From: Mizuhopecten yessoensis
Lineage: Eukaryota
Assembly: GCF_002113885.1 (NCBI RefSeq)
Contig: NW_018407050.1
Location: forward strand, 333,053 to 397,052
Reading direction: 5' to 3'
DNA length: 64,000 nt
Part shown: piece by piece, positions 2,267 through 33,826 of the stretch
How the letters are laid out: every line of letters starts with the position of its first letter
How positions within the stretch are numbered: the first letter of the stretch is position 1
Notes under the pieces: model-generated
What the model was told of the DNA's origin: nothing
Database searches by the model: none
What the model saw: the letters and a program-made list of their open reading frames with translations, nothing else
Program-made: the position numbers and the translations under genes

Positions 2267-3967
2267 ATGGCCACGCCCCAGTACAAAGGGCAGCTTCCTT
2301 CCCGTATCAAAGGTCAAACAACGTGTATGTACCACAAGGATAGAAAACTGGACATTTACTGTGAAGAATGCCAAGAGCTTGCTTGTATCAAATGCCTGTC
2401 AACTGTACATAAGAAACATCCTTTGTGTGACCTTAGTGAAATTACTCCAAAAAAGAATCAAGAGATTCAAAACTTCATCGACAAAACCGAGAATGCTGAC
2501 CTCGTACAAATTGACCAGTACATCACTGATACTGATACACATTTAAAGGACAATGCCAGCAACTTTGAAAAACTTTCCCAACAGTTGAAGAAACAAACAA
2601 TGAAAATTATACAAGATCTTTGCCAGCTTTCAGCACAGACTACGTGTCTCTATCAGCAAATGGAGGAGGATAACACCAAGCTACTACAAACCTACAAACA
2701 CGATCTGGAAATGTACAGCATACAGCTTAAACAACAAGTACAAGAATGTAAGATAGCACTTCAGCGTGGCACTGACATACAAATCTACGACGCAGGATTT
2801 GAGATTCATTCTCCTGTCACTCTCCCTGTAAAACCTACCCTGGGTACGGCTAGCTTCACTTCAAACCAAAATCCTAAGGGTCACATTGAACAAGCCTTGG
2901 GAAAAGTGGACACTTCAAATAAAGGTCAGGGTCAAGTCTCTGTTTGCCCCGATCAGTCATTTTCTGGACATGGTCATTCCTCTACACAGAAGTCGTCAGA
3001 ACGTAAAGTTAGGAGACCAAGTTCACAACAGAGCTCAGGAGAAAGAGAGGACGTGTCCAGTCCAGTATATACCCTGTTGTCTCAAACCAAAGTGTTGGAG
3101 GAGTGGCAGTCTCCATGTAATATTATTTCTGTATGTCCCACCACTAATGGTCAGGTGTGGACCACTTATAGTGACACCTTAACTCTTCTGAACAGGAAGG
3201 GGAAAGCAATACAGGAGGTTAAACACAATACTGGGATCACAGACATAAGTCTGTCACCTACAACCAACACACTGTAGATCTGTGACAAGGAAAACAACAT
3301 CACAGAGCTCGTGTCAGGACGACTAGTATACAGATTCAGCACCAGGGAGGAACCACGGTGTATCTGTATCACAGCTAGTAACCATGTCATTGTGGGGATG
3401 GACAAACACATCTCAAAATTTATCACAAATGGTAAACTGGTACTTACTTCATCAGCTTCAAAGACTGGGAAGCCATTAGTGTGCACACCATACAGGATCT
3501 CAGAGTGTCCTGTCACTCACAATGTCGCAGTGGCTGAGTTGGGTATTGCAGAGGAGGAGGAGGAGGAGGAGGAGGAAGAAGAGGAAGAAGAAGAAGAGGA
3601 GGAGGAGGAGGAGGAGGAGGAGAAAGAAGATGAAGGAGATGATAATAATGATGATGAATGGAAATCACATGTTGTTGTCATGGACACAGATTTCAATGAA
3701 CTATTTATATATGATGGTGAAGTCTCAAAATCAGAAAATGAACCGTTTAAATCTTTGGATGTTGTGTATGATAGTGTGGGTAACCTAGTCATAAGGGACT
3801 ATTACAAAAAGCGTGTCCTACTCATCAGTGGGTGTGGTGAGTTCCTTAGGATCATACACACAGACGACTACTACATTACACAGGCTGTTCGTGTTGACAG
3901 GGAGGATGTCCTGTGGGCAGTATTTGGGTATAGGGAGTTCAAACTACTACAGTACAGCAGCATGTGA
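2267..3967 (+). pseudogene. RING-less TRIM-like gene (B-box2, coiled coil, NHL-like beta-propeller), copy 1, interrupted by one in-frame stop
   Basis: ORFs 2267..3277 and 3311..3967 are in the same frame. TAG at 3275-3277 aligns with TGG (Trp) in both paralogs. B-box2 motif CMYH-x8-CEEC-x4-CIKC-x4-HKKH; 24-Glu tract at 3551-3622; 566 codons if read through. Confidence 0.85.
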
Positions 3968-4399
3968 CATCTAGACAGACTACAATGTATATATCTAGTT
4001 ATACCATGATAACTAACACTGATAGAATGATAGAAAACGACAGGATTACGTAATAAACCTCATCAAAAGATAATGTCTTTTTTTACCCGAGAAGCGAAAC
4101 CTCGGTACCCATTGATAATGTGTATATTACATTTGTTATAATGAAAATGTCTCAAAACTGTAATTCTTATAATGTAACTATCGCATAAGTCCTGCAAACA
4201 CGAATAGTTTGACAATTGAGTTGTATTACAATGGAAAACCTTATTTACACTGAATAATCTTCCTTTTTTAAAGTCGTTTATTTTATTTTGTGTATATTGC
4301 AGCTGAAAGACGTTTGTAAAAATAGTGTTGTACTGCAAAATTGTGGTGTCATTATTGTGGCAATTATGGTGTTTAACAAATTTTGTAGCGTGGATATGT

Positions 4400-5310
4400 T
4401 TTGAAATGTCTGGCTCCTGTGATCTTAGTGATATTACAAAAGTAAACAATGCCTAGTCCCTGTGATCTTACCAAAAGTTGCAATATCTGGCCCCTGTGAC
4501 TCTAAAAATGGTAGTTGTTATATTCTGCCTAACGTTCAGCATTAAGGGGAATGACAACCCGTTGTCAGCATAATGTGACCAGGTTAAATGCTGTGTTAGG
4601 TGTCTTTGGCATAGTGTTCCAGTGGGATAGCACTTTAAAGTCTGCATCAGATCCGCGCAGGCACGTAATACGAACATACCCTGTCTCCGGCACACATGCA
4701 CGCATGCTCCCTTTCACAACACACATGGAGGCACGTCCTTAAATAACATTAGCTGTTAATAGGATGTTAAATAAAATAAAAGTAAACTTAACTGACCCCC
4801 GTGCTCTTAGTGATATTACCAAATGCCATAATGTCGGGCCCCTTTGGTCATAGTGATATTACCAAAAGTGATTCAGAATTACATTAGAGACACCAGACGT
4901 TTTTATTAGATTCTCAAATAGTTTTGTAAAATAATCTCCCTTACAACAATTGTGATGATTGAAATACGTATTGTCCAATCAAATTCAAAGTACAAATAAT
5001 TTCTTATTTTGATACTTAAAGAAACTTATGTAAAAGTACCGTTTATATGATGTGTATATACTGTTATTTTTTGTAAAGAGAGGGCTTATATAGGCTATGC
5101 CTGTTGCCCAATTCCTTTTGTACATAAGATCAGTACAATAAAATATTCTGAAATAAAATAATGTCTGGTACCTGTGGTCATAGTGATAAAACCAAAAGTA
5201 ATACTGTCTAGCCCCTGTGATCCTAGTGACATTACCAAAAGCATTAATGTCTGGCCCCTGTGATCTTAGTGATATTATCTAAAGTAATCATGTCTGGCCC
5301 CTGTGATTTT
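4400..5310. repeat. Interrupted ~40-45-bp minisatellite (aatgtctggcccctgtgatcttagtgatattaccaaaagt)
   Basis: About nine degenerate units in three blocks (4405-4510, 4795-4870, 5160-5310). Confidence 0.75.
4521..4785 (+). mobile_element. 5'-truncated SINE
   Basis: Its 3' tail gcacgtccttaaataacattagctgttaataggatgttaaataaaataaaa is shared with the tRNA-headed SINE at 41355-41575. It interrupts the minisatellite. Confidence 0.55.
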
Positions 5311-7659
5311 GTCAACATTGTTATGTATAATATCTTAAGGAGCGTGACGTGACAATTTTAAAACACACACAAGAGGCCCCTATGACTTTATTGTTCAGCA
5401 GGATATTGAAGGAATCATGGCAAACGATTCTCGATTTAAGTATAGTATGGCAAATGGAATCCTAGAGATACGGTCAGTCCCTTTGGGCAATCCTGGTACG
5501 ATATGTGTATTCAAATATTCATGCTTGGCAATTGTTTTGTAATAGGGTGGGGATCTTAAATGTTTGCAAGTGATGAACCAGCGAGTAATTATCGACGGGG
5601 GAGCAGTCCCCAAGGCCGATCCTGGTAGCAGAGTTGTATTCATCCCTGCAATTGTTAAAATGGTTAAAGGATGGGGATATCAACTGTTTCAAAGTTATGA
5701 CCCAGGAAATAAGTCCCTAGGCATATGACAATACCCGTGGGTCGACGCTTAAAGCATTAATATATTAGTCTCTATATGCTTAGCGATTGTATATACGGTA
5801 ACGGGTTGGGAATCTCAACTGATTCCAAGTTGTGACCGAAATATTTTCAGTAGGGACAAAATCAGTTTATTCTCTCAGAGGTATTCTTGGCAATGATAAT
5901 AAATCTATTTTTCAAAATTGAGCTTTTTATTGTTTTAAACTTAAGTCGTACTTCTTATACATTGTAGTGCATATTATAATTGTGCTGAATTTGTATATAA
6001 TAATCTTCTTTAAAAATCATAATATAGATATTTCTTAGGAGATTATGATGTCAACTAAAATGTGATATGCACACATCTATGATTTAAAAAAATGTAGAGT
6101 TGACACTTTAAACTTTTGTTGATTTGTTATTCAACATGAAATTCAATATTTACTTTTTTATAGGTTTGTCAAACCAGTCATATTGTGGTAATAGGTTACC
6201 CGAACAATCTTCCGAGCCAGTAACCGATTAATCGGTCACTTCTTCGGTAAACAAATAATAAACAGCAACAAACACATTAAATAAACTATCTAAACGTATT
6301 TACTCCACAAACATACATGTATATATTAATTAGCAGGACAGTTTATTCGTGTATTTCAAGCTAAACGCAGGAAACAGCTGCATGTAACCTCAGTAAGTTT
6401 ATTTCATGGACAACAAATGTCGGAATGCAGTAAGACGGGATTCAATTACAGTTGTCTGTACTCGACATCATATGCGGTTACATTGTTCTTCAGTACTAAT
6501 ATTAATACCCGGCCTCCTTTGTCCCGGCCAGGTATCAAATCGATCCCATGCCTTGTAACGGAGAAGATTTTAGAATTAATTGATAGCACATTGGTCCGCA
6601 TCCATAAAAAGAGTTGTAATATGAACTTTTTATGTTGATACCCTATATAACTTAAAGTTAAACTCTGCCTAAGATGTCGTTAAATTATCAAGTTAATGTC
6701 GCAAGGGGAATCGAAATCTGAATTGACCGCCATGTTGGAAATTTCGTCTCTCTTCCGATATAGGTCAGACGTCTATATACATTGTATGGGTGTCATGACC
6801 CAATATGGAAATTGTAGTAAACATGACGGCATCAGTATTTATACTTATGCTGGTCATATAGAAAGGATAATTGAGATAACATCACGCGTGATCTTTCATA
6901 GTGTTTGTTTCTATTTTTTCCCCAAGACGGACTTGGCTAATTTCGTGAAAGCGTTTTTTTATTAGTAAGGATTTGTTTTTTCAACAATTATGCATTATTT
7001 TAATAACATTTTACTCATATGAGGCGTGAATTATATGCAATCTTACAGATTAGCACTTTTGATTTTGCTCCATTAGTTGGCATAGGACCGCTTCGTACCT
7101 CTGATGACGGAATTTATAAAAACTTTATACATTATCGCAGATAATTGTTTTTTAAAACAAAATTTGATCGACAAACGTTTTAAGACATGCATGCTCAGAC
7201 AGTGTGTACTCTTCAGATCATATTCACATCTCGCATGTAAAAGCGCGTTCTATCTCTAAGATTGTTTATGGTGTTGCCGACATCTCTTTGTCAAAAGTTA
7301 CAATAGAGTACAAAAACAACACTAACATGTTTTCCCTGAACCCTGAAAACAAAATCCGATTTTGGTCGCATCTATAGATAATTTGCAGATCTAAGACAGG
7401 GAAACATGGGGCTTCCGAAAGGGTTAAGAACATTTTCGACTACTCAGTTATTGATTTTGGTAACCGTTTCGTGGTCTTTCGACCGAGTTACCTGTTAACC
7501 GACTAGCCGATGACAACCCTACTCTTTTATAAAAACCACTCCACACCAAGAAACCACATGTACAGTAACCAAATGGTGTGTTCTTAACACAGATTTTTTT
7601 TTTTAATTTGATTTTTATTTTCATTTTAATGTGCAATATATACATCTTCATCAAATTAG

Positions 7660-11150: not shown

Positions 11151-11740
11151 GTGTAACACCAGAAGTATCCAAATGTAAGACACCAAGATGTGCTACATGT
11201 CCTATGATTATCGAGTGTAATGATTTTATTTTCAAGAATGGTTTGAAGTTTACTGTGAAGGTAAATATGAATTTTAAATCAAAAAATGTAATTTATGCAA
11301 TAGTTTGTTCTAAATGTGGTGATTTTTACATCGGTCAAACCGGTAATGAACTCAGAACACGTATGACTGTACATAGACAACAAACTAGAACTGATTCTTT
11401 ACGAAATCTTCATGTTAACAAACATATTCATGAATGTGCTGGAGATAAATTTAATGTATTACCTTTGTATCAACTATTTTCATCAGACACTATTTTAAGA
11501 GAAACGAAAGAAGACCAACTAATAAAAATATTAAAACCGAGTCTCAACAGGCCACAATAAAATTTTACGCCAAATTGTCCACCAATCTTGTGTACTTCGT
11601 GACGTCACGTTACTATTGTAGTGTGATGACATGTAATTGTGACGTCACGACGTTGTTCTCTTTTGAATAAACCTGAAGAGCCCTGTGAAGGGTGAAAGCA
11701 GCTAGTTTTTTAGTCGGTCGTTAATTTTATTTTTTCTNCT
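11151..11740 (+). mobile_element. 5'-truncated Penelope-like retroelement: GIY-YIG endonuclease (ORF 11204-11560) plus 3' pseudo-LTR region
   Basis: Upstream in-frame CKTPRCATC zinc knuckle, then NVIYAIVCSKCGDFYIGQTGNELRTRMTVH and C-terminal E...I..LKP.LN. Begins exactly where homology to unit 1 (tctgaagtgata, ~1110) stops. Confidence 0.88.
11669..11708 (+). ncRNA. Minimal type I hammerhead ribozyme in the Penelope 3' region
   Basis: AAAC-CUGAAGA-GCCCU(GUGA)AGGGU-GAAA-GCAGCUA/GUUU: conserved core boxes, 5-bp stem II, stem I AAAC:GUUU, very short stem III, CUA cleavage triplet (cut after 11704). Confidence 0.78.
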
Positions 11741-13903: not shown

Positions 13904-15700
13904 TTATATCGGTCTTAATCTTATTAAAGCTTGTGTTTTATTGTTATTCCTCGATATTGTCGACTTTAAATTAAGTTTTTCGTATCTGAAATCTCATTCT
14001 GAAAGCCGTATGATGAATCAGTAAATATCCGAGACCAACAAAAGCTACGCTCTTTCAAGGCTTTGCCTTTTCATACTAAACTACATTTTGAATACAATTA
14101 TTTTAGAAGAATGATTTTTTTCAAAAAGTGATTTCCCCAGATTTTGGACTTGTGAAAACCATCAAAAAACGCTAAAAAATGCAAAACAAACATGATTTTT
14201 TACCCACAATTTGGCCCACGCAAGTGCTATTCTTTTTCTTAAAACCTGTCTTAAATTAAATATCACCTATTCGGTAACAGAAATACTCAAGTTTTAGTAT
14301 AGGTTGTTCAACTGGATTTTTACACAAAATTTTCACATCTGCTGATTACAAAAATAGACTACATGAAAAACTAGCTTCTGTTGTGGAGACACAGATTTGT
14401 AAATGGCCAAAAATGTAATCTCAAACCAAATTCACAAAAAAATACATGATACATGTAATATTACAGGGGTTATTCATTGTACAAATATAACACCCATGGC
14501 CACCGTACGCTACTGTACACTGCTAAGGAGGCAGTACCCAAATCGGATCACTTTTTGCAAAAATACTTATAAATAAATAAATGTGTCAACAAATCAGTTA
14601 TAACAATGATGTAGTCTTAGAATCGATAGCCATACACCATTTTTTGTCTACAGATGATTAGTTTTTAAGTTCAAATAGCGCAAGAAAACGTAATTCAAGC
14701 TCAAATGTCAATGTTTTGATTACGTTTTTAAAAAATGGTGCGTGCGACGACTATGCATTCCGTTTTGGACTATAGGAATAAATTCACACTATAGAAATAC
14801 TTTTTGACATATCAATTATAAATATAAAGGTCATCATAAAATGTTAATATGCTGACAAAACAATATTCATTTGAATTGTAAGATACTGCAAAATTCAAGA
14901 CTTGATCCGATTTGGGACCTGACATTCGCAAAAACCGGAGACGCTGATTGGTGACTTCAGAGCGTTCTATAAATACCTCAAGTGAGCCCCGGTGCTAATT
15001 TCGTTTGTAAAACTCTCATCGATATTCCTCCTTTGATACAACCATAACTGAATATAATTCCTCCTGATATTTTTCAATGATTTAATAAAATAATCGTTCG
15101 GTAATCCGAACTGTCACCTTACCTGTATACAGAAGTAATAACATTTAAAAATACTTAGCAAACCTACCACAAAGTCCTTGCTGCTATCAGACCGTATATT
15201 TGATAAAAGTCAAAGGACTTTGAACTCATATCAGTAGGTCAATTTTGCAGGTTTTCGGCAACGACGCTAAACCGGGAAGTTATATTACCTGCAGAGTTAC
15301 ATACTGAGCTATAGGTCACACCTGTATAGATAACTAAAACCGGCATGCGCATGGAGGGCGATAGATAATAAAGCAGTCACTTTGGGCTGAATCTATAAGT
15401 ATCAAGACATTTCGAAATAACAACTAACTTGTAATTTATGGTTTGACATAGACGTTAAACATTGTCATTGTATGCCGACTGCCTGACATTGGAAACAAGG
15501 TGAGAGATGATGGTAACTTATGTTTTCCCATGATATTTTTAAACATATCCTCCAACACATTCATTCAGACAGGAACAGGCGAACCACTACTGATTAGTGA
15601 ACCTAAGGTTTCATTTCCCGATGTCAGACAAACTGCCTCACTGTGAAATCAATTTCCTTAAGTCCATTATCCTCAAGAGATTTTATATCTCGTCACTAAA

Positions 15701-17329
15701 ATGGCCACGCCTCAGTACAAAGGACAGCTTACTTCCCGTATCAAAGGTCAAACCACTTGTATGTATCACAAGGATAGAAAACTGGACATTTACTGTGAAG
15801 AATGTCAAGAACTAGCTTGTACCAAATTCCTGTCTACTGTACATAAGAAACATCCTTTGTGTGACCTTAGTGAAATTACTCCAAAAATGAATCAAGAGAT
15901 TCAAAACTTCATCGACAAAACCGAGAATGTTGACCTTGTACAAATTGACCAGTACATCACTGCTACTGATACACATCTAAAGGACAATACCAGCCACTTT
16001 GAAAAACTTTCCCAACAGTTGAAGAAACAAACGAAGAAAATAAACCAAGATCTTAACCAGCTTTCAGCTCAGACTCTGTCTCTCTATCAACAAATGGAGG
16101 AGGATAACACCAAGCTACTACAAACCTACAAACAGGACCTGGAAATGTATAGCACACAGCTAAAACAACAAGTACAGGAATGTAAGAAAGCACTTCAGGG
16201 CGGCTCTGACATACATATCTACGACACAGGACGTGATATTCAATCCCCTGTCACTCTCCACGTTAAACCTACCCTGGGTACTGCAAGCTTCAATCCGAAC
16301 CGAAATCCTAAGGGTCACCTGGAACAAGCCTTGGGAAAAGTGGATACGTCAAGTAAAGGTCGGGGTCAAACCTCTTTTCGATCCGATCAGTCATGTTCTG
16401 GACATGAACTACCCCCTACACAGAAGTCGTCAGAACGTACAGTTAGGAGACCAAGTACACAACAGAGTTCAAGAAAAAGAAATGAAGTGATCGATCCAGT
16501 ATATACCCTATTGCCTCAGACAACGGTGTTGGGGGAGTGGGTGTCTCCATATTATATGACTTCTGTATGTCCCACCACTGATGGTCAGGTGTGGACTAGT
16601 GCCTTTTTCACTGGCACTATAAATCTCCTAGACAGGAAAGGGAACGTTATACAGGAGGTTACACACAATGCTGATATTACAGACATAGGTATGTCACCTA
16701 CAACTAACACACTGTGGATCTGTGACAAAAACAACAACATCACAGAGCTCGGGTCAGGACGACTAGTATTACGATTCAGCACCAGAGAGAAACCACAGTG
16801 TATCTGTATTACAGCTAGTAATCATGTCATTGTGGGGACGGACAAACACATCTCAAAATTTACCACAAATGGTAAACTGGTACTTACTTCATCAGCTTCA
16901 AGGACTGGGAAACCATTAGTGTGTACACCATACAGGGTCTCAGAGTGTCCTGTCACTCACAATGTTGCAGTGGCTGACAGTGACAGTGAAGATGATGGTG
17001 GTAAAGGGAAACCACGTGTTATTGTCATGGACACAGATTTCAAGGAATTATTTGAATATGATGGTAAAGTCCCAGATACATATCAGCCAACATCACAGTC
17101 AGGAGGTCAACCATTTAACCCCTGTGGTGCAGTGTATGACACTGTGGGTAACCTCGTCATCGGGGACTTTAACAATAAGAGTGTCCTACTCATCAGTGGG
17201 CGTTGTGAATTCCTAAGGATCATATATACACATGACTACTGTACCTATGCTGTTGAAGTAGACAAGAATGGTGTTCTATGGGCAGCGTTTGGGGGTTACT
17301 ATGTCCAACGACTACAGTATCTGCATTAA
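15701..17329 (+). CDS. RING-less TRIM-like protein (B-box2, coiled coil, NHL-like propeller), copy 2, 542 aa, uninterrupted CDS
   Basis: Long ORF, collinear paralog of copies 1 and 3. NHL-like blades such as FNPCGAVYDTVGNLVIGDFNNKSVLLIS. B-box Cys43 is replaced by Phe. Confidence 0.9.
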   Translation: MATPQYKGQLTSRIKGQTTCMYHKDRKLDIYCEECQELACTKFLSTVHKKHPLCDLSEITPKMNQEIQNFIDKTENVDLVQIDQYITATDTHLKDNTSHFEKLSQQLKKQTKKINQDLNQLSAQTLSLYQQMEEDNTKLLQTYKQDLEMYSTQLKQQVQECKKALQGGSDIHIYDTGRDIQSPVTLHVKPTLGTASFNPNRNPKGHLEQALGKVDTSSKGRGQTSFRSDQSCSGHELPPTQKSSERTVRRPSTQQSSRKRNEVIDPVYTLLPQTTVLGEWVSPYYMTSVCPTTDGQVWTSAFFTGTINLLDRKGNVIQEVTHNADITDIGMSPTTNTLWICDKNNNITELGSGRLVLRFSTREKPQCICITASNHVIVGTDKHISKFTTNGKLVLTSSASRTGKPLVCTPYRVSECPVTHNVAVADSDSEDDGGKGKPRVIVMDTDFKELFEYDGKVPDTYQPTSQSGGQPFNPCGAVYDTVGNLVIGDFNNKSVLLISGRCEFLRIIYTHDYCTYAVEVDKNGVLWAAFGGYYVQRLQYLH

Positions 17330-18143
17330 TATGTAACAGGACAAACTACAATGTGTGTATCTAGTAACCATGACAACAAACACTGATATTTTGATCGAAG
17401 TTGTCATGATACTCGATAAACTTCATAAATAGAGGATCTTACATTCGTGTCCGTTTCATATTGAATTTATTAAAAGAGTTTAATAATTTGATGTCGTATT
17501 GGATTTATTGAACAAATGGGGCTCAATGAGGGAATACAGTGATAAATGTTTAAAACCTGCGATTGGAGGAATTTTAGCTACATTTTGTGTGGAGCATCTT
17601 TTAGCAAGAGGAGGTTTATTTTGCATAAACAGAGGGTGTGGCTCTCCTAGCGGGCAGAGGAGCGCGGCCCAATAGGGACAACATAACAATAAATGTTTAA
17701 AATCCTTTTCCTTCAACACAATGAGAAAGGTTTTAACCAACTATTGTGTATAGCATCCTTGGGCAAAGGGGAGTCAGTATTTTTAAACAGAGAGTGACTC
17801 CCCATCTAGGGATAGAAAGGTGGGGCCTAATAGGGATCTTAAAAATCCCTCCTTCACACGATTGGAAGGATTTTAATCAAATTTGGTGTAAAGCATCTTT
17901 CGGCAAAGGGGACTTGATTTGTATATACTAATAAGGTGTCACAATGAGATAGCAAAACCCAGTACAGTCTTACATCACCTAACAATGCTCATTTGTTTGT
18001 GACGTCATCATGCGCTGTTTAAGTGACGTAGTATTAGATATAGGCAACAAATAACAAAACTGTTAGAAATATCAATCATGATGTCATTTTTTTTCTTTTT
18101 TCAAACAAGCATCAAATGCTTTTGCTAACGCCATGATACTTAA

Positions 18144-18234
18144 TTAACTCATTCACCCCTGAAATTTCATAATGAACTATTCACACTTTTGATTTGGAAG
18201 AGTTCAAATGTGTCATCAGGGGTGAATGAGTTGA
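18144..18234. mobile_element. ~90-bp TTAA-flanked piggyBac-type MITE; relatives at ~34678, 40287, 47876, 57235, 57427, 63262 and 63554
   Basis: ttaactcattcacccctga...tcaggggtgaatgagtt; a second subfamily reads ttaaccctttcacc...gaaagggttaa. Confidence 0.75.
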
Positions 18235-21028
18235 ACAGAACAAAGTCGCTTTAATGATTGAATTTCTGTATTATATAACAACAGGTGTGTCTTTGATAGG
18301 AATATACATTTACAGCTACCTGTATGTTGTAACGATGCAATCTTTTGATCCGAGTGTTATTAGTAATAGTAGCAATGTCTGGCAAGTAGTAAACTAAATG
18401 CGATCCCCTGAGGCAATCCCTAGTATGATATATGTATCTAAATCTTCATGCTTAACAATTGTTTTGTAATAAGGGTGGGGATCTCAACTGTTTAAATTCT
18501 TCGACACAGCAGTTAAATCTCCATGGATGGGGCCGAACCCTGAGACCATCCTGGTAGAATGTGTGTGTATTCGTTTCAGCAATTGTATATGTGGTTATAG
18601 GTTGGGGGATCTTATTTTTTCCCGAGCTAAAAACTCTATCCAGCCCCGCCCCTCATCCCTAGGTTCATCCCTTCAACGGGGTTGAAAATAATTTTAAATA
18701 TATTGTTTCACCTTTCCTCAACAAGTGACGGATAGTCTTCATAGTAATTAAGTTTGAGAGAGATGATTTTGTTAATTTCATCAAATAATGTTGATATGCC
18801 AAGATTCCAAATTGTCTGTGTTGTGTTTTGCTTTTGTTGTGGGTTTTTTCAAAAGAGAAAATGGTCTTAAAAGACAATTATCCATTTTGAGACAATACCT
18901 CTAGATACTACACTGATTTGTTGTATTTTTTAAAATCATCTTTTACAAGAGCAAGATTTAAATAAAGAGATCCAGTTATCTTTGAACCGGTGATATTTTC
19001 ATCTAATAAGTAAACATATCTTGTTGTTAAAACTTCTTCAGACTGAAATAAAACAGCAGTAAAGGAAGATGTGTCATTAAAACTCAATAATGACATCACA
19101 ACGTGTCACTACATGTCAGTCAATGTACCCTGAGTGTGAGACATTAACCTACAGGACTTAATGATGAAAAATATGTGATAATTTAATTTCTAATGACTTC
19201 TTAAATCCATATACAAATTACCTGATATATTTGATGGACAGTCACCGTGAGCATACTTGCCAACTCTCCCTATTTAGGAGAGAGACTCTCGATTTTGGAC
19301 CCTTAAATTTGGTAGTTTCAACTAGAGAGTTTTCTAAACTACACTTTTGTTCTAAGATCTAATGAGACAACTCAAAATATGTCATTTTAAAGGGTTATTT
19401 TGTCTCTAGGGGGGGTTATACACACATTTTATTTCTGTTTTAATTTTGAGCATGCAGAATCTCCCCCATGGGAATGTCAGAATTTGGCAAGTATGCATGA
19501 GACATTTTCAATATGGAAAAAAATCTGTTGGTTTTTTTCCGTGGTATTCTTCGAAATGATAATAAATCTATGTTTCACAAATAGGTTTCTGAACTTATCA
19601 TAATTTAGTAATAATTAAAATACAGTGTGGTGTATATTATAAGTGTGCTTCTTTTGTATATATTTAAAAAAAAGTAATTATTATGAGATTATCAATACTT
19701 AGTGATTAAATAGAGAATTTATGCTTTAACCTTTGTTGATTTGTTTTTAAACATGGAATTCAATATTTACTCTATTTATAAAGATCACTCCCCACCAAGA
19801 AACCACATGTACACCAACCAAAGGGTGGTCTCTTAACACAGGTTTGATTTATCTTACAAACCCTGTATGTTCTGAGATTATTTTACTTATTTCAGTTGAT
19901 CGTGACTACACTACAATCTGTTTATATGTTATTACCATACCAGACAGTGTATAAGTTAAAGTAATACAGTTTAACATATCATACAATGATACATGATACA
20001 TCTAAATGTGAAAAAGTGTTGAAATTAATTAAATATAACATTTCATAATTCTCCACAACATAATTTTATGACTTTCATAAAACATGTCTGGAAATTTGCA
20101 TTCGAAAGGAAGGATGGATAAAAAATAACGAGGACAGATGGAAACAATCCAGTAAGATTAAATACTTTATGGAGTTAATGTATGACTTTTTTTAATAAAT
20201 GGTAAGGTCTAAAATGTGTCTAAATCAAATCAAATATATTTTAATAAAAATAAACTAAAATTAAATTCTTATCCCGATAGTATTTTTCTCAAATTTCCCC
20301 TCCCCATTATATGGTATACGCTATGGTACGCCTCCCCCACCCAATACATCTTCATATGGGTCTTCAGTTACACACATGATTGACACCTGGAGGGCTATAA
20401 CCAATTGGCGCTTGTAAATCTTACAATAGTATGATTCAGTTCTTGGTCCTCTGCCAGTGACAAAACACACACGTGTTGTATATATGAAACACAAAACACA
20501 TTTTTCATTTGTTTTTATATTTCATTACGTGATGACTGAGCGCCGTGTAGATACTATATTCGCCCATTACCCACTCGCCCTGGCAGTGTCTCAATAAAAG
20601 GTCAGTTAAACACCTGAAAAGGGCAGATTATATAGAAATACCTGTGGTGTACTTCAATGTTTCCTCCGAGTTTAGCTGCTAAGCTTGGTCAATTGTTGAA
20701 TTTCACAACATGTTTAAAAGCTCCAGTGTTGACACATGTACTGCATAAAAAACTGAAGAAGATATATTGACATGTGATATAATTACTTAACACAGTACTT
20801 TGACGGACCTATGACCTTAGGTGACCGATAGGTATATACATTGTGCTTTCGTATAGCTTTAATTAGTTTATAATATGAGCAAGTGATTCGGCTATTTTTT
20901 ACGTACAACATGTGGAAATGAAAAATACGCTGAATTTTAATTCAATTGACATAGGACATTTATGGCAGTATGAACACTAAAAGTCATCTACATTTAGTAA
21001 ACACAGTATAATGTGACGTAGATGATAT

Positions 21029-22263
21029 ATTATGGATAACTGATTATGAATTACTGATTATGGATAACTGATTATGAATTACTGATTATGAATTACTGAT
21101 TATGAATTACTGATTATGGATAACTGATTATGAATTACTGATTATGGATAACCGATTATGAATAACTGATTATGAATTACTGATTATGGATTACTGATTA
21201 TGGATAACTGATTATGAATTACTGATTATGAATAACTGATTATGGATAACTGATTATGAATTACTGATTATGGATAACTGATTATGGATAACTGATTATG
21301 AATTACTGATTATGGATAACTGATTATGAATTACTGATTATGGATAACTGATTATGAATTACTGATTATGAATTACTGATTATGGATAACTGATGATGGA
21401 TAACTGATGATGGATAACCGATTATGAATTACTGATTATGAATTACTGATTATGGATAACTGATTATGGATTACTGATTATGGATAACTGATTATGAATT
21501 ACTGATTATGAATAACTGATTATGGATAACTGATTATGAATTACTGATTATGGATAACTGATTATGAATTACTGATTATGAATAACTGATTATGGATAAC
21601 TGATTATGAATTACTGATTATGAATTACTGATTATGAATTACTGATTATGGATAACTGATGATGGATAACTGATGATGGATAACCGATTATGAATTACTG
21701 ATTATGAATTACTGATTATGGATAACTGATTATGGATAACTGATTATGGATAACTGATGATGGATAACCGATTATGATTTACTGATTATGAATTACTGAT
21801 TATGGATAACTGATTATGGAATACTGATTATTGATAACTGATCATGAATAACTGATTATGGATAACTGATTATGGATAACTGATTATGAATTACTGATTA
21901 TGGATAACTGATTATGGATAACTGATTATGGATTACTGATTATGGATAACCGGTTATGAATTACTGATTATGAATTATTGATTATGGATAACTTATTATG
22001 GATTACTGATTATGAATAACTTATTGTGGATAACTGATTATGAATTACTGATTATGGATAACCGATTATGAATTACTGATTATGAATTATTGATTATGGA
22101 TAGCTGATTATGGATTACTGATTATGTATTACTGATTATGAATTACTGATTATGGATAACTGATTATGAATTACTGATTATGGATAACCGGTTATGAATT
22201 ACTGATTATGAATTACTGATTATGGATAACTGATTATGGATAACTGATTATGAATTACTGATT
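21029..22263. repeat. 14-bp minisatellite (ATTATGGATAACTG / ATTATGAATTACTG), roughly 88 units
   Basis: Directly visible; two interspersed unit variants. Confidence 0.95.
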
Positions 22264-26892: not shown

Positions 26893-27089
26893 GGAAAATA
26901 GAAGGTACAAAGAATGTAGAGAAAGGAGGGAAGGGGAGACGGTAGACGTGGAGGAGATAGGAGTCGTCTGTCCTTTATCGTCAAATGTACAATCTCCTCC
27001 ACCACTCTGCTTAGGTTTCGGTGAACGTAAATTGAACATTTTGCACACTAAACTTAGACATCAGGGTAGTCCACTTAAAAATGATTTTT

Positions 27090-28599
27090 TGACTACGTCT
27101 CCCACATGTTTGAACTTTTTGTCATGCACTCAAGATGTCTTGGATTAAAAAAATTACTAACCCCTCAAATCAGGCAGGATGGAAAACACTATTATTAGAC
27201 AAACTAGAGTGCTTTGGAGGCGACAAAATTTTCAAAATGACAAAAGACAGATTAATGTTATTAGCCAAAAAATTTAATACCTTTTGGATGGAAGTGTTTA
27301 CGGCTTGGGCCTCTATGCAAGAAAATGCATCCCCCCACAACCCCAGAGAAGGTGGTCTCGCAACCAATTTGGTATAATTATTTTATTAAAAGAGGCAATA
27401 ATTGCATTCTTTATGAAAACTGGTGTAAAAAATATGTATTTTTTTATTTCTGACTTGTTAGAAAATAATCAATTCATGTCTTGTGATATTTTTTCTCAAA
27501 AGTATAATATAAATGTAAATTTTATAGATTACTATGGAGTTATTAATGCCATACCAAGAAATTGGAAAGACATTTTGCAGAATATAAATGGTGACATACC
27601 TTATATAACTTATAAATCAATAATCTATCTTAATACACATGATAAAGTTACTAATTATTTCTATCATATTCTTCTCCAAACTATCTCTGAAAAACCGGTG
27701 AATAGTCAAAGAAAATGGCAAGAAGATCTCCATAGTAATATTAGTGAAGAATCTTGGGAATATTTTAACTCGATTCCAAGGGCCATAACTGATGACACAA
27801 AACTTATTAACTTTCAGTATAAAATCATACACAGGATCATCTACACCAACACAAAATTAATGAGATGCAAATTAGCTGAAACTGAAAATTGCACATTTGG
27901 TACAAATGAGAGAGAAACTATTATACATCTTTTTGGGGAATGCAGTATAATAAAAACTTTTTGGTTATGGCTGATAGATACGCTAGAAAATAAGTACCAA
28001 ATTATCAATTATCTTGCCCAGACACCCAACAACTTTTATTTTTGGTGTAGTAGAAAAAGAACATGGAGACAAGATTAATTTTGTATTGCTCATTATGAGA
28101 TACTATATATATTTATGTAAGTTAAAAAACACTGCTCCTACCATTCTGGAAGGGAAAACATACCTTATTTTTTATAATAAAATAGAAGATATGGGTCTGT
28201 ATGCCTATAACAACAAGAAGCAAGAAAAAATCAAATGCAAATGGATTTTTATCAATCATTTATTTACTTAACTGAGCTGACATTGTTAATATATTTTGGG
28301 TAAAGTCTTTAGAGCCATATATTCCTGTCGATAACTTCACATCTAAATGTATTCAAAATAGAAATGATCTGTCTTACTTACAGATGTCATGGTACTCTGT
28401 ACTTGTCTTTAAAAAACGTGAAATATCCGATGGAAATATAATCTAAATGCATGAGTAAACAGTTAAACTCATATATATATATATATATACGATTCTGATG
28501 GGTATATAGTTACAGAATGAAAATGGTTACATGAAACAATTGTAATGTGCATGTAAATGTAGTAAAATGTGATTATGAAAAAAAGTTGAATAAAAAAAA
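27090..28599 (+). mobile_element. 5'-truncated, frameshifted L1/Tx1-clade LINE (ORF2 C-terminus plus 3' UTR)
   Basis: LRLPHV*TFCHALKMSWIKK; LINFQYKIIHRIIYTN...CTF...ETIIHLFGEC (zf-RVT-like); A-rich tail; 14-bp TSD taaaaatgattttt at 27076-27089 and 28600-28613. Confidence 0.88.
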
Positions 28600-29280: not shown

Positions 29281-31543
29281 GGTAGGTACAATGTAAATCT
29301 TGTACGCCGCTCCCGCTCCCGTTCCAGGATTTAACGCGATCGTTTATATATATTTTTTTTTATAAAATTATACAATAATTTCAAACATTATTTTCTAAAT
29401 GTGGATTTTTAAAAAAAATAAATTATTTTCTAATAATTTAGAAATTGACGATAATATGTTTTTCAAGGGGGTAAAACTTGAACGCCGCAGTCAACAGTAA
29501 AGAACACGTTTTTCACATATAATTAGATATTGAGTGAAAACTAACATGTTATTTTCAGGTATTTAGAACAAAATACCTCACTGTTTATAAGTATATAAGT
29601 TTCGTTGCAATAAACGACATATTTCACATGGAATTCTGACTTTGTTGTGATCGCGGGAGTTTTGTTTACTCAGAATGAAACCAACTAGCGCTGCATCAGC
29701 ACAAATTCATCGTACAGGCGAGGACCATTGGGCAGTGTCAGTACAGGAGGTAGATAGTGGGGAAGTATACATTCTTGATAGTTTGATAGGAAATACGAAA
29801 CAGAAGGGTCATTTGTCAGCTTCTTTAGAAATGCAGATGCAGTTGTCATCATCATATGGGGAAAATAGTTTTTTTTAGAAACAGTATTACCAAATGTGCA
29901 ACAACAGTGGCGGATCCAGAGGGATATTTTAGGCATTCTAATAGAATGGCTATAAGAGTTCTACTTGATAACGACAGCTTGACAGACTGATGTCCCCTTA
30001 GTACGGGTACGGGAGTAAACAAAACACCTGCGATCAAAGTCAGAATTTTGTGTGAAATATGTCGTTTATGTAGCAGTGTATCTGCTCTGGGATCGCTGTG
30101 TACTTAAGCACCACAGAAGACATCAGTTCGATTCCAAGATTTATTCTGGGTGTCGAATAAACCCTATAACAACAATATAACAGTACATTAAAACAAATTC
30201 TCAAACTTACACTACCTGAACGAGTTATGAACTCGTCCAAATCTAACACGACCGGTTAACGCACTCAGTACAAACACGCTTCACTATACAAGTACTACTA
30301 AAGTACAATACCGGATAACCCAGTCGCTATCATACATTACAGAGTCAACGCTCGTACGCTATGAATTACAATACATAATTCACTCTGTTAGTTAGTAATA
30401 CAATATATATACATATCACGTTGTCGCATTGAAATTGACTCAATTACAGCACTTATGTTTATAAGAAATGCACAAAATTACAAATACTGTAAGTTACACT
30501 AAATACACAAATTTATACATTAAAGCAACAACCTACCTCTTCAAAAAGGGAAGAGGGCTTAAGGGACACAACCCGTGGATGACGGTATACCAGGCCACAG
30601 AACGAAACGTAGGATCTACAAATTATGTTAAATAATTAGCAAAGATAACAAAAGTTAACTTTCACCAGAATTTAGAAAACAATTATAATGAATGAAATAT
30701 ATCTCAACACACCTCTTCTGAATAATGTAAAAGATAAACGTGAACTCCAAACAACATGAAATTCAAATTACAAAAGATCGATTCACTCACAATTCAACAG
30801 AGAGCCTACTAAATATAATTCAACATCGATCTTTACCAGATGATACAATTACAATAATCCTAAAAGATACTTATTTACAATATAGTTAATGTACAACATG
30901 ATCAGTACTTACATAATTTCCAAGTACAAAGGATGAAAATGGCCTCTCTCAATAAAACCCAACCATCATCATACAACGTCCACAGGTGTGTGAATTTACC
31001 GCGCGCCTTGCGCAATGCCCACTGGGCATTCAGATAAAAATAGATTCGCCCTTTGACATAGCAAAGAACCGGTTTATAATACATAATAAAATAAGACATA
31101 CACTTGCGTCACAAAACACCGGACCGGAACTTGCACACTTCTATTAAAATACAATAAACGGTCTACAAAATTGTACCCTACTACATTTATTGCAACGAAA
31201 CTTACATAATTATAAACAGTAGGGTATTTTGTTCTACATATCTGAAAATAACATGTTAGTTTTCACTCAATATCTAATTATATGTGAAAAACCGTGTTTT
31301 TCACGGTTGACTGCGGCGTACAAGTTTTACCCCCTTAAATTCACATTATCGTCGATTTCTAAATTATAAGTTAATAAATAGACATTTTTGTAACTGTCAC
31401 ATTTCGAAAATAACGTTTGAAATTATTGTATAATTTTATAAAAAAATATAAACGATCGCGTTAATGAGATATTAAAATATCTATATATTCCTGGTACGGG
31501 GTTTTGGGACGGGAGCGGGAGTGGCGTACAAGATTTACCTACC
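29281..31543. mobile_element. DNA transposon remnant with ~335-bp TIRs and a Ulp1-like peptidase fragment (Mutator-like, tentative)
   Basis: 29281-29614 is the reverse complement of 31186-31543. Internal QIHRTGEDHWAV...YILDSL...NVQQQ at 29675-29910. No TSD recognised. Confidence 0.7.
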
Positions 31544-32197
31544 ATCTCTGATAACACCCGGAACACGGCGGTTTACAATTGTATAAAAACAACTAGCTCG
31601 GTAGGTTTTCATCACAATTTGACAAAAAATCAAAATATTTTAAACTTATATCAGCAGGTGAAGTTTGCAGGTTTTCAGCAACGTCGTTAAACCGGGAAGT
31701 GCAGAGTGAGGAAGGCGAGCCTACTGATCATGAGCTACAGACGGGGTTGCCGCTACGTATGTACACAGACGATATATTGAGCCACCCATATTTCTACCCG
31801 GGTAGACAACTGAAACCGTCATGGCGCATGGAAGGCTGGGTCGATTTTAATATCATTCAACAATCTGGCCGGGTAGATCGTGAAGCAGTCAACTTTGGCT
31901 GAATTAATCATTTACTTGCAATTTACGTTTTGACAATTTTGTATGGCGACTAGCTAGGCAGCCTAATGGCAGAGACGTATATACATACGTCTCTATTAAT
32001 TGTGAAAAGCGTTTTCTCTTCTCACGATATTTTTCAAATTCTCCAACACATTCACCAAGGCAGGACAAATTGAACCACTCCTGATTAAGTGAAGTTGGGG
32101 TATTTTTGAAGATTTAATTTCCCGATGTCGGACGAACTGCTTCACTGCTATAGTCGATAATCCTCGAAAGTGTTATACATTGTATCTCGTTACTAAA

Positions 32198-33826
32198 ATG
32201 GCCACGCCCGAGTACAAAGGGCAGCTTCCTTCCCGTACCAAAGGTCAAACCACGTGTATGTACCACAAGGGTAGAAAACTGGACATTTACTGTGAAGAAT
32301 GCCAAGAACTTGCATGTACCAAATGCCTGTCTACTGTACATAAGAAACATCCTTTGTGTGACCTTAGTGAAATTACTCCAAAAAAGAATCAAGACATTCA
32401 AAACTTCATCTACAAAACTGAGAAAGTTGACCTCGTACAAATTGACAAGTACATCACTGCTACTGATACACGTCTAAAGGACAATGTCAGCCACTTTGAA
32501 AATCTTTCCGAACAGTTGAAGATACAAACAAAGAAAATAATACAAGATCTTAACCAGCTTTCAGCTCAGACTCTGTGTCTCTATCAACAAATGGAGGAGG
32601 ATAACACCAAGCTACTACAAACATACAAACACGATCTGGAAATGTACAGTACTCAGTTAAAACAACAAGTACAGGAATGTAAGATAGCACTTCAGCGTGG
32701 CTCTGACATACAAATCTACGACACAGGATTTGATATTCAATCTCCTGTCACTCTCCCCGTTAAACCTACCCTGGGTACTGCTAGCTTCACTCCGAACCGA
32801 AATCCTAAGGGTCACCTGAAACAAGCCTTGGGAAAAATGGACACTTCAAGTAAAGGTCAGCGTCAAGTCCCTTTTCGCCCCGATCATGTATTTTCTGGAC
32901 CTGGTTATTCCTCTACACAGAGGTCGTCAGAACAAAAAGTTTGGAGACCAAGTTCACAACAGAGCTCAGGAGAAAGAAATGACGTGTCCAGTCCAGTGTA
33001 TTCCCTGTTGCCTCAGACCAAGGTGTTGGGGGAGTGGGAGTATCCATCTGGCATCAGTTCTATATGTCCCACCACTGATGGTCAGGTGTGGTCCAGTGAC
33101 TTTGACAGAAAAACCTTACCTCTCCTGGACAGGAAGGGGAAAGTTATACAGGAGGTTGAAAACAATACTGGGATCAAGGACATAAGTATGTCACCCACAA
33201 CCAACACACTGTGGGTCTGTGATAATGAAAACAACATCAGAGAGCTTGTGTCAGGACGACTGGTACACAGATTCAGCACCAGGGAGTTCCCACTGTGTAT
33301 CTGTATTACAGCTAATAACCATGTCATTTTGGGGATGGTCAACAAAATCTCAAAATTTACCACAAATGGTAAACTGGTACTTACTACATCACCTACAAGG
33401 ACTTGGAAACCATTAGTGTGTACACCAAACAGGATCTCAGAGTGTCCTGTCACTCAGAATGTCGCAGTGGCTGACAGTGATAGTGAACATCATGGTGGTG
33501 AAGGACAATCACATGTTGTTGTCATGGACACTGACTGCAAGGAACTATTTGTATATTGCGGTGAATACAGACATACATATCAACCACCATCACAGTCAGG
33601 AAGTGAACCATTTAACCCCTCTGGTGTGGTGTATGACAGTGTGGGTAACCTAGTCATAGGGGACCGTAACAACAACCGTATCCTACTCATCAGTGGGCGT
33701 GGTGAGTTCCTCAAGATCATACACACAGATGACATCTTTACATCGGCTGTTGGTGTAGACAAGAAGGGTGTTCTGTGGGCAGCGTTTGGGATTTTCTATG
33801 TCAAACTACTACAGTATCTACATTGA
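32198..33826 (+). CDS. RING-less TRIM-like protein (B-box2, coiled coil, NHL-like propeller), copy 3, 542 aa, intact
   Basis: ATG at 32198 in the same AAAATGGCC context as the paralogs; the track's TTG start at 32180 is not the likely start. Complete B-box ligands; NHL-like FNPSGVVYDSVGNLVIGDRNNNRILLIS. Confidence 0.92.
   Translation: MATPEYKGQLPSRTKGQTTCMYHKGRKLDIYCEECQELACTKCLSTVHKKHPLCDLSEITPKKNQDIQNFIYKTEKVDLVQIDKYITATDTRLKDNVSHFENLSEQLKIQTKKIIQDLNQLSAQTLCLYQQMEEDNTKLLQTYKHDLEMYSTQLKQQVQECKIALQRGSDIQIYDTGFDIQSPVTLPVKPTLGTASFTPNRNPKGHLKQALGKMDTSSKGQRQVPFRPDHVFSGPGYSSTQRSSEQKVWRPSSQQSSGERNDVSSPVYSLLPQTKVLGEWEYPSGISSICPTTDGQVWSSDFDRKTLPLLDRKGKVIQEVENNTGIKDISMSPTTNTLWVCDNENNIRELVSGRLVHRFSTREFPLCICITANNHVILGMVNKISKFTTNGKLVLTTSPTRTWKPLVCTPNRISECPVTQNVAVADSDSEHHGGEGQSHVVVMDTDCKELFVYCGEYRHTYQPPSQSGSEPFNPSGVVYDSVGNLVIGDRNNNRILLISGRGEFLKIIHTDDIFTSAVGVDKKGVLWAAFGIFYVKLLQYLH

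Follow-up and report, generated by a model that had tools for sequence, protein, structure and literature searches.

RING-less TRIM-NHL-like genes of a scallop with positive diversifying selection on the top face of the propeller

Three tandem genes in the window

The whole stretch of scallop DNA analysed here, 64 kb in length and called the window below, carries three tandem paralogs on the same strand, which are intronless and have a protein identity of 70-76%. By tblastn there are no further copies in the 64-kb window, and a fourth, intact copy lies on the same contig approximately 14 kb upstream of it. An exact-protein look-up for these genes returned no record. The features are as follows.

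1705..2266, + strand: sequence 5' of copy 1, with a co-duplicated counterpart at 15159-15700, ahead of copy 2 (self-blastn)
2267..3967, + strand: copy 1, a B-box/coiled-coil/NHL gene broken by an in-frame TAG (translation and alignment to copies 2 and 3)
3275..3277, + strand: in-frame TAG of copy 1 at a codon that is TGG in copies 2 and 3, within blade 2 (strand b) (three-way DNA alignment; a genome search likewise reports one TAG)
3552..3622 (about), + strand: (GAG/GAA)n microsatellite of copy 1 (sequence; alignment gap in copies 2 and 3)
15701..17329, + strand: copy 2, an intact 542-aa ORF with the B-box zinc ligand Cys43 changed to Phe
17330..18497, + strand: sequence 3' of copy 2, with a co-duplicated counterpart at 33827-35039, behind copy 3 (self-blastn)
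32198..33826, + strand: copy 3, an intact 542-aa ORF and the reference for the model and the residue numbering
32246..32362, + strand: B-box of copy 3, residues 17-55, of B-box2 type with eight Cys/His ligands (Pfam PF00643, E = 2.4e-9)
32363..32695, + strand: coiled-coil helix of copy 3, residues 56-166, a single helix in the AlphaFold2 model
32696..33004, + strand: linker of copy 3, residues 167-269, mostly disordered (pLDDT <50 except for a short helix)
33005..33823, + strand: NHL beta-propeller of copy 3, residues 270-542, with six blades (24 strands, pLDDT >90)

An earlier, sequence-only reading of this DNA has to be corrected with regard to copies 1 and 2. The Trp lost to the TAG of copy 1 is invariant in 93 relatives, and the microsatellite lengthens the blade 4 b-c loop, which is on the top face, by approximately 31 residues, the majority of them Glu; copy 1 probably represents a pseudogene or null allele. 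The B-box cysteine replaced by Phe in copy 2 is at least 90% conserved in the 93 relatives. Damage thus affects two of the three copies in the window, with a stop in one and the loss of a zinc ligand in the other.

The duplications extend beyond the coding sequences. The final ~180 bp of the copy 1 5' flank are also common to 32019-32197 upstream of copy 3 (self-blastn), and the co-duplicated 5' flanks have a divergence of K = 0.09-0.27. The 3' flanks of copies 2 and 3 are 87% identical (K = 0.143 over 1137 aligned bases) and were used as a non-coding yardstick of divergence.

Architecture and predicted fold

In each copy, a single B-box is followed by a long helix, then by a disordered linker and finally by a six-bladed NHL propeller. 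The RING-less B-box/NHL architecture proposed from the sequence is borne out, given that Pfam finds both domains, with PF00643 scoring over the gathering threshold in each copy (E = 2.4e-9 to 2.6e-6) and NHL above the cut-off in copy 3 only, and that there is neither a Pfam RING match in the copies nor a C3HC4-type pattern in a six-frame translation of the window. Every copy's ATG is preceded by in-frame stops, and Met1 is invariant in the 93 relatives. Without a RING, there is no evident output mechanism. The eight B-box ligands are invariant or nearly so in relatives, copy 2 lacking one, and the sequence matches of the B-box in the PDB are the B-boxes of TRIM3 and TRIM2.

An oligomerising stalk had also been proposed, and the prediction goes some way towards it. 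Residues 56-166 form one long helix, for which a homodimer is predicted with an ipSAE of 0.69 (best control, 0.00), although the predictor may be reproducing TRIM dimers of solved structure. Of 30 solved homodimers, 21 scored above the pass mark, as did 0 of 23 solved single chains. The predicted contacts are antiparallel (for instance, residue 89 with 140-147 and 71 with 158-161), at least 98% of them are common to three runs, and the partner chain has a pLDDT of 88 or more. The helix probably forms an antiparallel TRIM-type dimer.

The linker has a conserved motif at approximately residues 187-212 (columns P187 to G212), which includes the short helix (203-211), and residues 194-215 contact the partner chain in the predicted dimer. 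It is also variable, with a dN/dS of approximately 1 among the three copies. No filamin domain was matched by Pfam, and residues 173-266 are disordered in the model. For the propeller, Foldseek returns the TRIM2 NHL domain (7qrv; E = 5e-16, TM 0.78), and the best structural matches are the NHL domains of TRIM2, Thin, Lin41, TRIM3 and Brat. RNA-binding folds are among the closest, namely TRIM2, the RNA-bound forms of Lin41 and Brat, and Mei-P26. At the sequence level, phmmer matches reach the TRIM71, TRIM3 and TRIM2 NHL domains (TRIM71, E = 3.6e-11).

Variation, selection and family history

The top face is defined here as the d-a and b-c loops, with faces assigned from the strand order in the predicted model. 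In Brat, these loops form the top, RNA-binding surface (PMC4015489), and in human TRIM-NHL domains the diversity is located at the top opening (PMC9634614). Seven variable segment triplets had been listed in the sequence-only reading and placed on the top face of the propeller; all seven are present as written, and each lies in a d-a or b-c loop of the copy 3 AlphaFold2 model, ahead of a blade's first strand or behind its second. In the trio, differences occur at 58 of the 80 positions in top loops, compared with 13 of the 51 in bottom loops (Fisher p = 1.4e-7) and 48 of the 142 in strands (Fisher p = 3e-8). The clustering of differences in propeller loops that had been noticed in the trio holds genome-wide, with an entropy in 49 full-length paralogs of 1.56 bits in top loops, 0.48 in bottom loops and 0.68 in strands. 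Top loops of 3-5 residues come in 28-43 variants among the 49 genes, compared with 3-19 for bottom loops, in which one variant is often common to approximately 40 genes.

Across 15 sister pairs that are independent of one another, the top loops have a dN of 0.207 and a dS of 0.115, which gives an omega of 1.81 (bootstrap 1.36-2.48), compared with 0.48 for bottom loops, 0.78 for strands, 0.30 for the coiled coil and 0.40 for the B-box. A maximum-likelihood partition model places the top-loop omega at 1.99 (LRT 77 vs omega = 1). Codon site models, run with our own script on a fixed topology with scaled branch lengths and not with PAML or HyPhy, favour M2a over M1a (LRT 1005) and M8 over M7 (LRT 1056, the comparison suggested in the sequence-only reading), where all such LRTs assume a single tree and are inflated in a family that recombines. 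The positively selected class entails approximately 13% of sites, with an omega of approximately 5.2-5.3. The copy 3 propeller carries 33 top-face sites inferred to be positively selected (M2a, posterior >0.95), of which 25 are in top loops, 8 in strand ends adjoining top loops and 0 in bottom loops. As a negative control, the same site test on the B-box/coiled-coil half gave an LRT of 0. With the higher silent divergence of the N-terminal half as the yardstick, the top-loop omega falls to approximately 1.2. Compared with non-coding DNA, the top loops of the window copies have non-synonymous differences of 0.28 and 0.25 per site, vs 0.13 and 0.083 in the flanks (Fisher p = 6e-7 and 4e-8). Of the outcomes that would have spoken against the sequence-only reading, scattered variable sites and a loop dN/dS of 1 or less are both contradicted, as the variable or selected sites are found on one face only and the loop dN/dS is above 1. 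The top face is under positive diversifying selection, and purifying selection acts on the remainder of the protein. Positive selection among paralogs points to diversification of binding and not to an arms race with pathogens.

The family is very large, with 75 or more copies in each genome. In-frame stops occur in approximately 5 of roughly 78 scored loci, and full ORFs are kept in approximately 94% of scored loci, at silent divergences of 0.1-0.5. The clades are species-specific, with every scallop species having its own, and expansion of the family took place independently in each of these species. The trees of the B-box/coiled-coil and linker/propeller halves are incongruent and reject each other (delta lnL 710 and 249), and the silent divergence of the two halves differs 4-5 fold, which together indicates exchange between paralogs. 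The birth-and-death evolution proposed earlier is consistent with the species-specific clades and broken copies, but given the incongruent histories of the halves it is not pure birth-and-death. Likewise, the proposed constant stalk is constant at the protein level but not at silent sites, where it is the older and more diverged half.

A candidate repertoire of intracellular binders and known systems

By analogy with Brat and Lin41, the top face would be a ligand-binding surface, and the family would hence be a RING-less, TRIM-NHL-like, germline-encoded repertoire of intracellular binders with a diversified top face and many specificities, a reading to which we give a probability of approximately 0.6. 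The proteins, encoded by intronless genes, would be cytosolic and would join a conserved B-box and long dimerising helix through a disordered linker to a propeller with conserved strands and bottom face, and with a top face (loops and adjoining strand ends) that differs in almost every paralog. The likeliest targets would be non-self, such as viral or other parasite proteins or RNAs, or perhaps transposon products. Bivalent binding by the dimer could lead to sequestration and assembly or to recruitment of a RING-bearing partner, outputs that are considered because an E3 domain is missing from the proteins themselves. New specificities would arise by tandem duplication and point substitution in the loops, with some copies dying and the linker/propeller half also being exchanged among paralogs. 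An immune function is suggested by analogy. In oysters, Dermo-tolerant and sensitive families have been reported to differ in their TRIM2/3-like transcripts (PMC9892467), and TRIM upregulation after OsHV-1 challenge is cited in the same paper.

A wider version of this reading, which we put forward tentatively and at less than even odds, is that scallops, and perhaps molluscs, have an uncharacterised class of germline-encoded, NHL-propeller intracellular recognition receptors, with dozens to hundreds of RING-less B-box/coiled-coil/NHL genes whose near-unique top faces are kept diverse by positive selection, whose linker/propeller is exchanged independently of an older, vertically inherited dimerisation module, and whose targets are viral or parasite proteins or RNAs. 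If true, scaffold and specificity would evolve on separate tracks.

The strongest competitor, which we nevertheless consider unlikely, is that these are diversified post-transcriptional regulators with a top face that binds endogenous mRNAs or transposon transcripts and not pathogens. The nearest folds are those of RNA-binding TRIM-NHL proteins (TRIM2, Lin41, Brat and Mei-P26), Brat is also RING-less and uses its top face as an RNA platform (PMC4015489), and the selected sites are enriched in Asn, Tyr, Arg, Lys, Asp and Trp, of which Arg, Lys, Tyr and Asn would suit RNA. However, canonical RNA-binding tops are electropositive (PMC9634614, PMC4015489), whereas a count of charged residues in the top loops of the 49 paralogs gives net charges between -12 and +6 (mean -0.5) and the blade 4 b-c loop is acidic. 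An omega of approximately 5 and a nearly unique face per paralog would also be unusual for regulators of host mRNAs. Still less probable are substrate adaptors or regulators for endogenous proteostasis, which would heterodimerise via the coiled coil with RING-bearing TRIM-NHL ligases of the same genome and direct these to many host substrates, or else act as dominant-negative decoys; the predicted TRIM-type antiparallel dimer and the lack of an own RING fit this, but slowly evolving host substrates would not drive such an omega, or a unique face in almost every recent duplicate.

Relaxed constraint in a decaying birth-and-death family, in which the loops are simply least constrained, many copies are turning into pseudogenes and there is no adaptive diversification, is very improbable. 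It would account for the stop and microsatellite of copy 1, the zinc-ligand loss of copy 2, the high whole-gene omega of 0.5-0.74 and the linker omega of approximately 1 in the trio, but relaxation cannot raise omega above 1, and the top loops are at 1.8-2.0 with one site class at approximately 5. The equally exposed bottom loops are more conserved than the strands in both omega and entropy, most scored loci keep full ORFs despite their silent divergence, and top-loop change is 2-3 fold above non-coding flank divergence. Misalignment of indel-rich loops, together with gene conversion that violates the single-tree assumption, is largely excluded as the source of the signal: three top loops do contain indels and the trees of the two halves conflict, but gap-free columns in the sister pairs give a higher omega (2.21, and >1 in 14 of 15 pairs), the short indel-free loops 343-345, 490-493, 511-514 and 531-533 are among the most variable, the pairwise sister comparisons are tree-free, and the N-terminal control is null by the same method.

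The candidate repertoire belongs to the same broad gene class as the bivalve 'TRIM2/3/45/71-like' expansions, for which earlier reports are at the annotation or expression level and an expanded bivalve B-box orthogroup has been listed (PMC8382680); in the literature searched, we found no site-level selection analysis, NHL top-face mapping or module discordance for these expansions. The TRIM-NHL proteins of class C-VII (TRIM2, TRIM3, TRIM32/Thin, TRIM71/Lin41, Brat and Mei-P26) have the same B-box2, long coiled coil and C-terminal six-bladed NHL propeller, and their ligand face is the variable face of the scallop proteins. The filamin/ABP280 domain is present in TRIM2, TRIM3 and TRIM71 and absent in TRIM32 and Brat. 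The scallop proteins have neither RING nor filamin, with a disordered linker of approximately 100 residues in filamin's place; Brat is RING-less too, but has two B-boxes instead of one. The scallop genes are also intronless, with at least 75 copies per genome vs 3-5 in flies, worms and mammals, and their top face, which the charge count suggests is not consistently electropositive, is positively selected rather than conserved.

The fungal NLR-like HNWD/HET proteins have hypervariable WD40 propellers, with diversifying selection on positions of one face that recur once per blade, and sequence exchange. A beta-propeller as the recognition domain (putative in the scallop), one-face diversifying selection and exchange between paralogs are common to both systems, but the scallop propeller is NHL and not WD40, is without NACHT/NB-ARC or effector domains, and is diverse mainly between genes and not between internal repeats. 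TRIM5alpha and the fish finTRIMs are tandem multigene families in which a TRIM scaffold carries a B30.2/SPRY head with positively selected surface loops, expanded in a lineage-specific manner. The scallop family likewise has a duplicated B-box and coiled-coil scaffold (with the dimer predicted here) and a putative C-terminal recognition domain with selected loops; it differs in its NHL propeller head, in the absence of a RING and thus of an intrinsic E3 output, and in an antiviral role that is proposed by analogy. If the wider reading is true, the family would be an invertebrate counterpart of TRIM5/finTRIM with a different head domain and output.

Three tandem genes and their predicted architecture

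The ORF listing and translations place three intronless paralogs in tandem, with 70–76% protein identity among them:

2267–3967 (+), copy 1
15701–17329 (+), copy 2
32198–33826 (+), copy 3

Searching the 64-kb window with each copy (tblastn) gave no further family member; the contig carries a fourth copy, intact and 527 aa long, about 14 kb upstream of the window. Besides the CDS, the duplicated unit takes in 180–560 bp on the 5′ side and at least 1.2 kb on the 3′ side. Copy 1 carries TAG at 3275–3277, where the DNA alignment has TGG in copies 2 and 3, replacing a Trp that is invariant in 93 relatives, and a (GAG/GAA)n expansion at approximately 3552–3622 adds about 31 residues, mostly Glu. Sliding dS within the trio is only mildly uneven, which gives little support to a mosaic origin of the copy 1 C-terminus as a single event. 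In copy 2, residue 43 (15827–15829) is Phe, at a B-box position where the family shows a zinc-ligand Cys with at least 90% conservation. The B-box of this copy may be defective despite the intact ORF; at least one other paralog (L039) likewise lacks a B-box Cys. An exact-protein look-up for expression evidence returned no record.

Transposon remnants and satellites occupy the spacers between copies, and the window holds the following other elements:

11204–11557 (+), 118-aa ORF encoding a GIY-YIG nuclease domain (E = 1.9e-6), which fits a Penelope-like element adjoining the hammerhead motif at 11669–11708, upstream of copy 2
21029–22263, satellite array, 14-bp unit within 42/70-bp higher-order repeats
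27284–28075 (+), 264-aa ORF matching the reverse-transcriptase zinc-binding domain zf-RVT (E = 9e-6, slightly below the Pfam cut-off), remnant of a retroelement in the spacer that separates copy 2 from copy 3
41765–43086, satellite array, degenerate 40-bp unit
50678–51466 (-), 263-aa ORF with a partial Y_phosphatase3 (tyrosine-phosphatase-family) match (E = 2e-7)
51912–53070 and 53537–53991, satellite array in two blocks, 37-bp G+C-rich unit, local G+C up to 0.50
53230–53527, inverted satellite block between these two
55368–56090 (+), single-exon 241-aa ORF with BTB_2 (E = 3e-16) and KCTD C-terminal (4e-21) domains, a KCTD-like gene downstream of the array
60108–60817, satellite array, 14-bp unit, about 53 copies

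Pfam detects the B-box in each of the three copies but an above-threshold NHL repeat in copy 3 alone, with no RING or filamin match in any of them, and a RING-like Cys/His pattern is absent from every frame of the window. Stops precede the ATG of each copy, and Met1 is invariant in the family. The translations contain no hydrophobic N-terminus or membrane segment, so the products are presumably cytosolic. The AlphaFold2 model of copy 3, built from a 93-sequence alignment, has a mean pLDDT of 79.9.

Segments of the AlphaFold2 model of copy 3
Residues 17–55: B-box
Residues 56–166: single helix
Residues 173–266: disordered stretch, with a short conserved helix at 203–211
Residues 270–542: propeller of 24 strands in six four-stranded blades, closed by an N-terminal strand, pLDDT above 90

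The best PDB matches by Foldseek are the NHL domains of TRIM2 (7qrv, TM 0.78), Thin, Lin41, TRIM3, Brat, TRIM71 and Mei-P26, and phmmer against PDB sequences matches the NHL domains of TRIM71/3/2 and the B-boxes of TRIM3/2. Homodimer prediction for residues 12–215 reached an ipSAE of 0.69, compared with 0.00 for the best control, and passed a mark that 21 of 30 solved homodimers reach but none of 23 single chains of known structure does; three runs agree on at least 98% of contacts, with a partner pLDDT of 88 or more. Contacts are antiparallel, and a conserved linker motif folds back onto the coil. This motif (copy 3 residues ~187–212, 32756–32833: P187, P190, L192, F197, N200, P203, L207, A210 and G212) is strongly conserved, with A210 invariant and the same stretch present in copies 1 and 2. 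Its short helix contacts the partner chain in the model, a packing that resembles the L2 segment of TRIM coiled coils, which packs back on the coil. The family proteins are predicted to dimerise; the model resembles TRIM dimers of known structure and may simply reproduce them.

A 673-aa Pecten maximus relative (P0085, a gene model) has a death-effector-like domain at residues 13–92, ahead of its B-box and NHL propeller. At 27 bits this match is under the Pfam cut-off of 36 and hints weakly at a connection with death-fold signalling. Provided that the gene model is correct, a death-fold adaptor occupies the position of the TRIM RING in some members of the family.

Diversifying selection on the propeller top face

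Strands a–d of each blade were assigned from the copy 3 model. The sequence-only reading had quoted seven segments that differ in all three copies and had placed them before the first or after the second strand of each blade. Every one is found in the three-way alignment, and all seven fall in d-a or b-c loops, which ‘by definition’ make up the NHL top surface, the RNA-binding platform in Brat (Loedige et al., PMC4015489). Human TRIM-NHL domains likewise show sequence diversity at the top opening (PMC9634614). Among copies 1–3 the top loops are significantly more variable than the bottom loops (Fisher p = 1.4e-7) or the strands (p = 3e-8), and they have the highest mean per-column entropy in 49 full-length paralogs extracted from the genome. 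Each three- to five-residue top loop occurs in 28–43 distinct versions in these 49 genes, while most bottom loops have a single version common to about 40 of them.

Variation and selection by structural class (variable positions in copies 1–3; entropy in bits, 49 paralogs; dN/dS summed over 15 phylogenetically independent sister pairs; omega under the partition model)
Top loops: 58/80; 1.56; 1.81; 1.99
Strands: 48/142; 0.68; 0.78; 0.88
Bottom loops: 13/51; 0.48; 0.48; 0.58
Linker: entropy 1.15; dN/dS 0.63
B-box: entropy 0.85; dN/dS 0.40; omega 0.32
Coiled coil: entropy 0.70; dN/dS 0.30; omega 0.30

Across whole domains of the three window copies, Nei-Gojobori dN/dS is 0.26–0.39 for B-box plus coiled coil, 1.0–1.6 for the linker and 0.63–0.85 for the propeller. 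In the sister pairs, the top-loop ratio (dN 0.207, dS 0.115) has a bootstrap range over columns of 1.36–2.48 and departs from neutrality with a binomial p of 2e-6; it is 2.21 on gap-free columns and exceeds 1 in 14 of 15 pairs. Top-loop omega is only about 1.2 if N-terminal dS is the yardstick, but top, bottom and strand codons alternate along the sequence, which makes local dS the proper one. Co-duplicated non-coding flanks provide a further comparison: the non-synonymous top-loop difference is 0.28 per site between copies 2 and 3, against 0.13 in the flanks (Fisher p 6e-7), and 0.25 between copies 1 and 2, against 0.083 (p 4e-8).

Codon models (M0, M1a, M2a, M7, M8 and partition; GY-type, F3x4) were fitted with our own Python script on a fixed topology with one scale factor on branch lengths, which makes the sizes of the likelihood-ratio tests (LRTs) approximate. 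Whole-gene omega is 0.70, and the partition model rejects omega = 1 for the top loops (LRT 77, p = 1e-18). For the propeller, M2a is preferred to M1a (LRT 1005; omega 5.3 at 13% of sites), and M8 against M7, the comparison that the sequence-only reading had proposed for PAML, also favours a selected class (LRT 1056; omega 5.2 at 13% of sites). The 33 propeller sites with a posterior above 0.95 comprise 25 top-loop residues and eight strand residues adjoining top loops, among them the second residue of strand a in blades 2–6, and no bottom-loop residue. Under the same procedure the B-box/coiled-coil half collapses to M1a (LRT 0, zero selected sites). Because the two gene halves have different histories, LRTs that assume one tree are inflated; hence, the case rests on the sister pairs, on the contrast between top and bottom loops, whose interleaved codons have one common history, and on the N-terminal control. 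One propeller face is under diversifying selection, with purifying selection elsewhere; the variable sites are concentrated rather than scattered and loop dN/dS exceeds 1, as the sequence-only reading had expected.

Shuffling of loop cassettes was rejected as the chief source of diversity: only seven of 66 top-loop pairs show all four variant combinations and nearly every top-loop variant is unique, so point substitution dominates.

Expansion of the family and the histories of the gene halves

A six-frame search of the 988-Mb, 82,659-contig assembly gave at least 85 matches at 60–76% identity, a lower bound since scoring covered 80 of the 810 first-look candidates. Nearly all of these matches are intact single ORFs; in-frame stops occur in about five. 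The best named protein matches are all from Mizuhopecten yessoensis, followed by Pecten maximus, Argopecten irradians and Ylistrum balloti proteins annotated as ‘uncharacterized’ or ‘TRIM2/3/71-like’, and the ESM Atlas holds many molluscan B-box plus NHL clusters without RING. In a 93-protein scallop tree each species forms its own clades, and the window clade lies within a Mizuhopecten-only group. The expansion is lineage-specific, and the species-specific clades together with the broken copies support the birth-and-death evolution previously proposed from the sequence. Homology between dispersed paralogs stops 40–310 bp past the stop codon and 50–690 bp ahead of the ATG, limits that are not decisive as a retrocopy signature.

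At silent sites of the B-box/coiled-coil half, the members of the window trio are closest to one another (dS 0.16–0.24), with other arrays at 0.3–0.6 and a large dispersed clade saturated, above 2. For the propeller half, tandem neighbours are no closer than paralogs on other contigs (dS 0.15–0.28), and dS to the large clade reaches only 0.46. Across the family, silent divergence falls 4–5 fold, fairly abruptly, at codons ~165–190, the end of the coiled coil. The N-terminal and propeller alignments reject each other’s trees (delta lnL 710 and 249, KH/SH p = 0).

Four-fold-site p-distances (B-box; coiled coil; linker; propeller first half; propeller second half)
Window clade vs large clade: 0.84; 0.72; 0.26; 0.40; 0.27
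Within large clade: 0.21; 0.22; 0.075; 0.054; 0.035
Within window trio: 0.32 (31 sites only); 0.135; 0.124; 0.136; 0.156

The likeliest explanation is that the linker/propeller module has been repeatedly exchanged among paralogs via gene conversion or recombination. The low propeller dS across the family could instead reflect constraint on silent sites, or less frequent mutation, in the 3′ part, but within the window trio the drop at the coiled-coil end is not seen and silent divergence is uniform along the gene, which is at odds with this alternative unless the trio N-termini were locally homogenised. The sharp silent-site break points to modular exchange as a mechanism worth study by itself.

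Putative function and comparison with known receptors

Asn, Tyr, Arg, Lys, Asp and Trp are over-represented at the selected sites, and Val, Leu, Ile and Thr are under-represented. Top-loop net charge ranges from -12 to +6 (mean -0.5), in contrast to the uniformly electropositive tops of RNA-binding TRIM-NHL proteins (PMC4015489). This pattern weakens the case for a conserved RNA-binding role, although some members may bind RNA. We infer that the selected top face is a putative ligand-binding site. In oysters, TRIM2/3-like transcripts are among those distinguishing Dermo-tolerant from sensitive families, and the same study cites TRIM upregulation after OsHV-1 challenge (PMC9892467); a B-box orthogroup is expanded in bivalves (PMC8382680).

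The putative ligands would be diverse and probably non-self. Bivalves live in water rich in microbes and viruses, in which herpes-like viruses cause mass mortalities, and to our knowledge they have no adaptive immunity. Expanded “TRIM-like” genes in bivalve genomes were already known, as annotation. The literature searched contained no site-level analysis of molluscan NHL propellers and no earlier report of an NHL-propeller head whose top face is under strong positive selection, of the RING-less nature of this family or of separate histories of the head and stalk modules. With the NHL top face and its 33 listed residues, a loose annotation becomes a receptor hypothesis open to testing, under which specificity should follow the loops when these are swapped. 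B30.2 TRIMs already provide a case of a hypervariable head on a TRIM stalk, and the principle of a conserved oligomerising stalk with such a head, seen with SPRY and LRR domains, would here extend to the NHL propeller.
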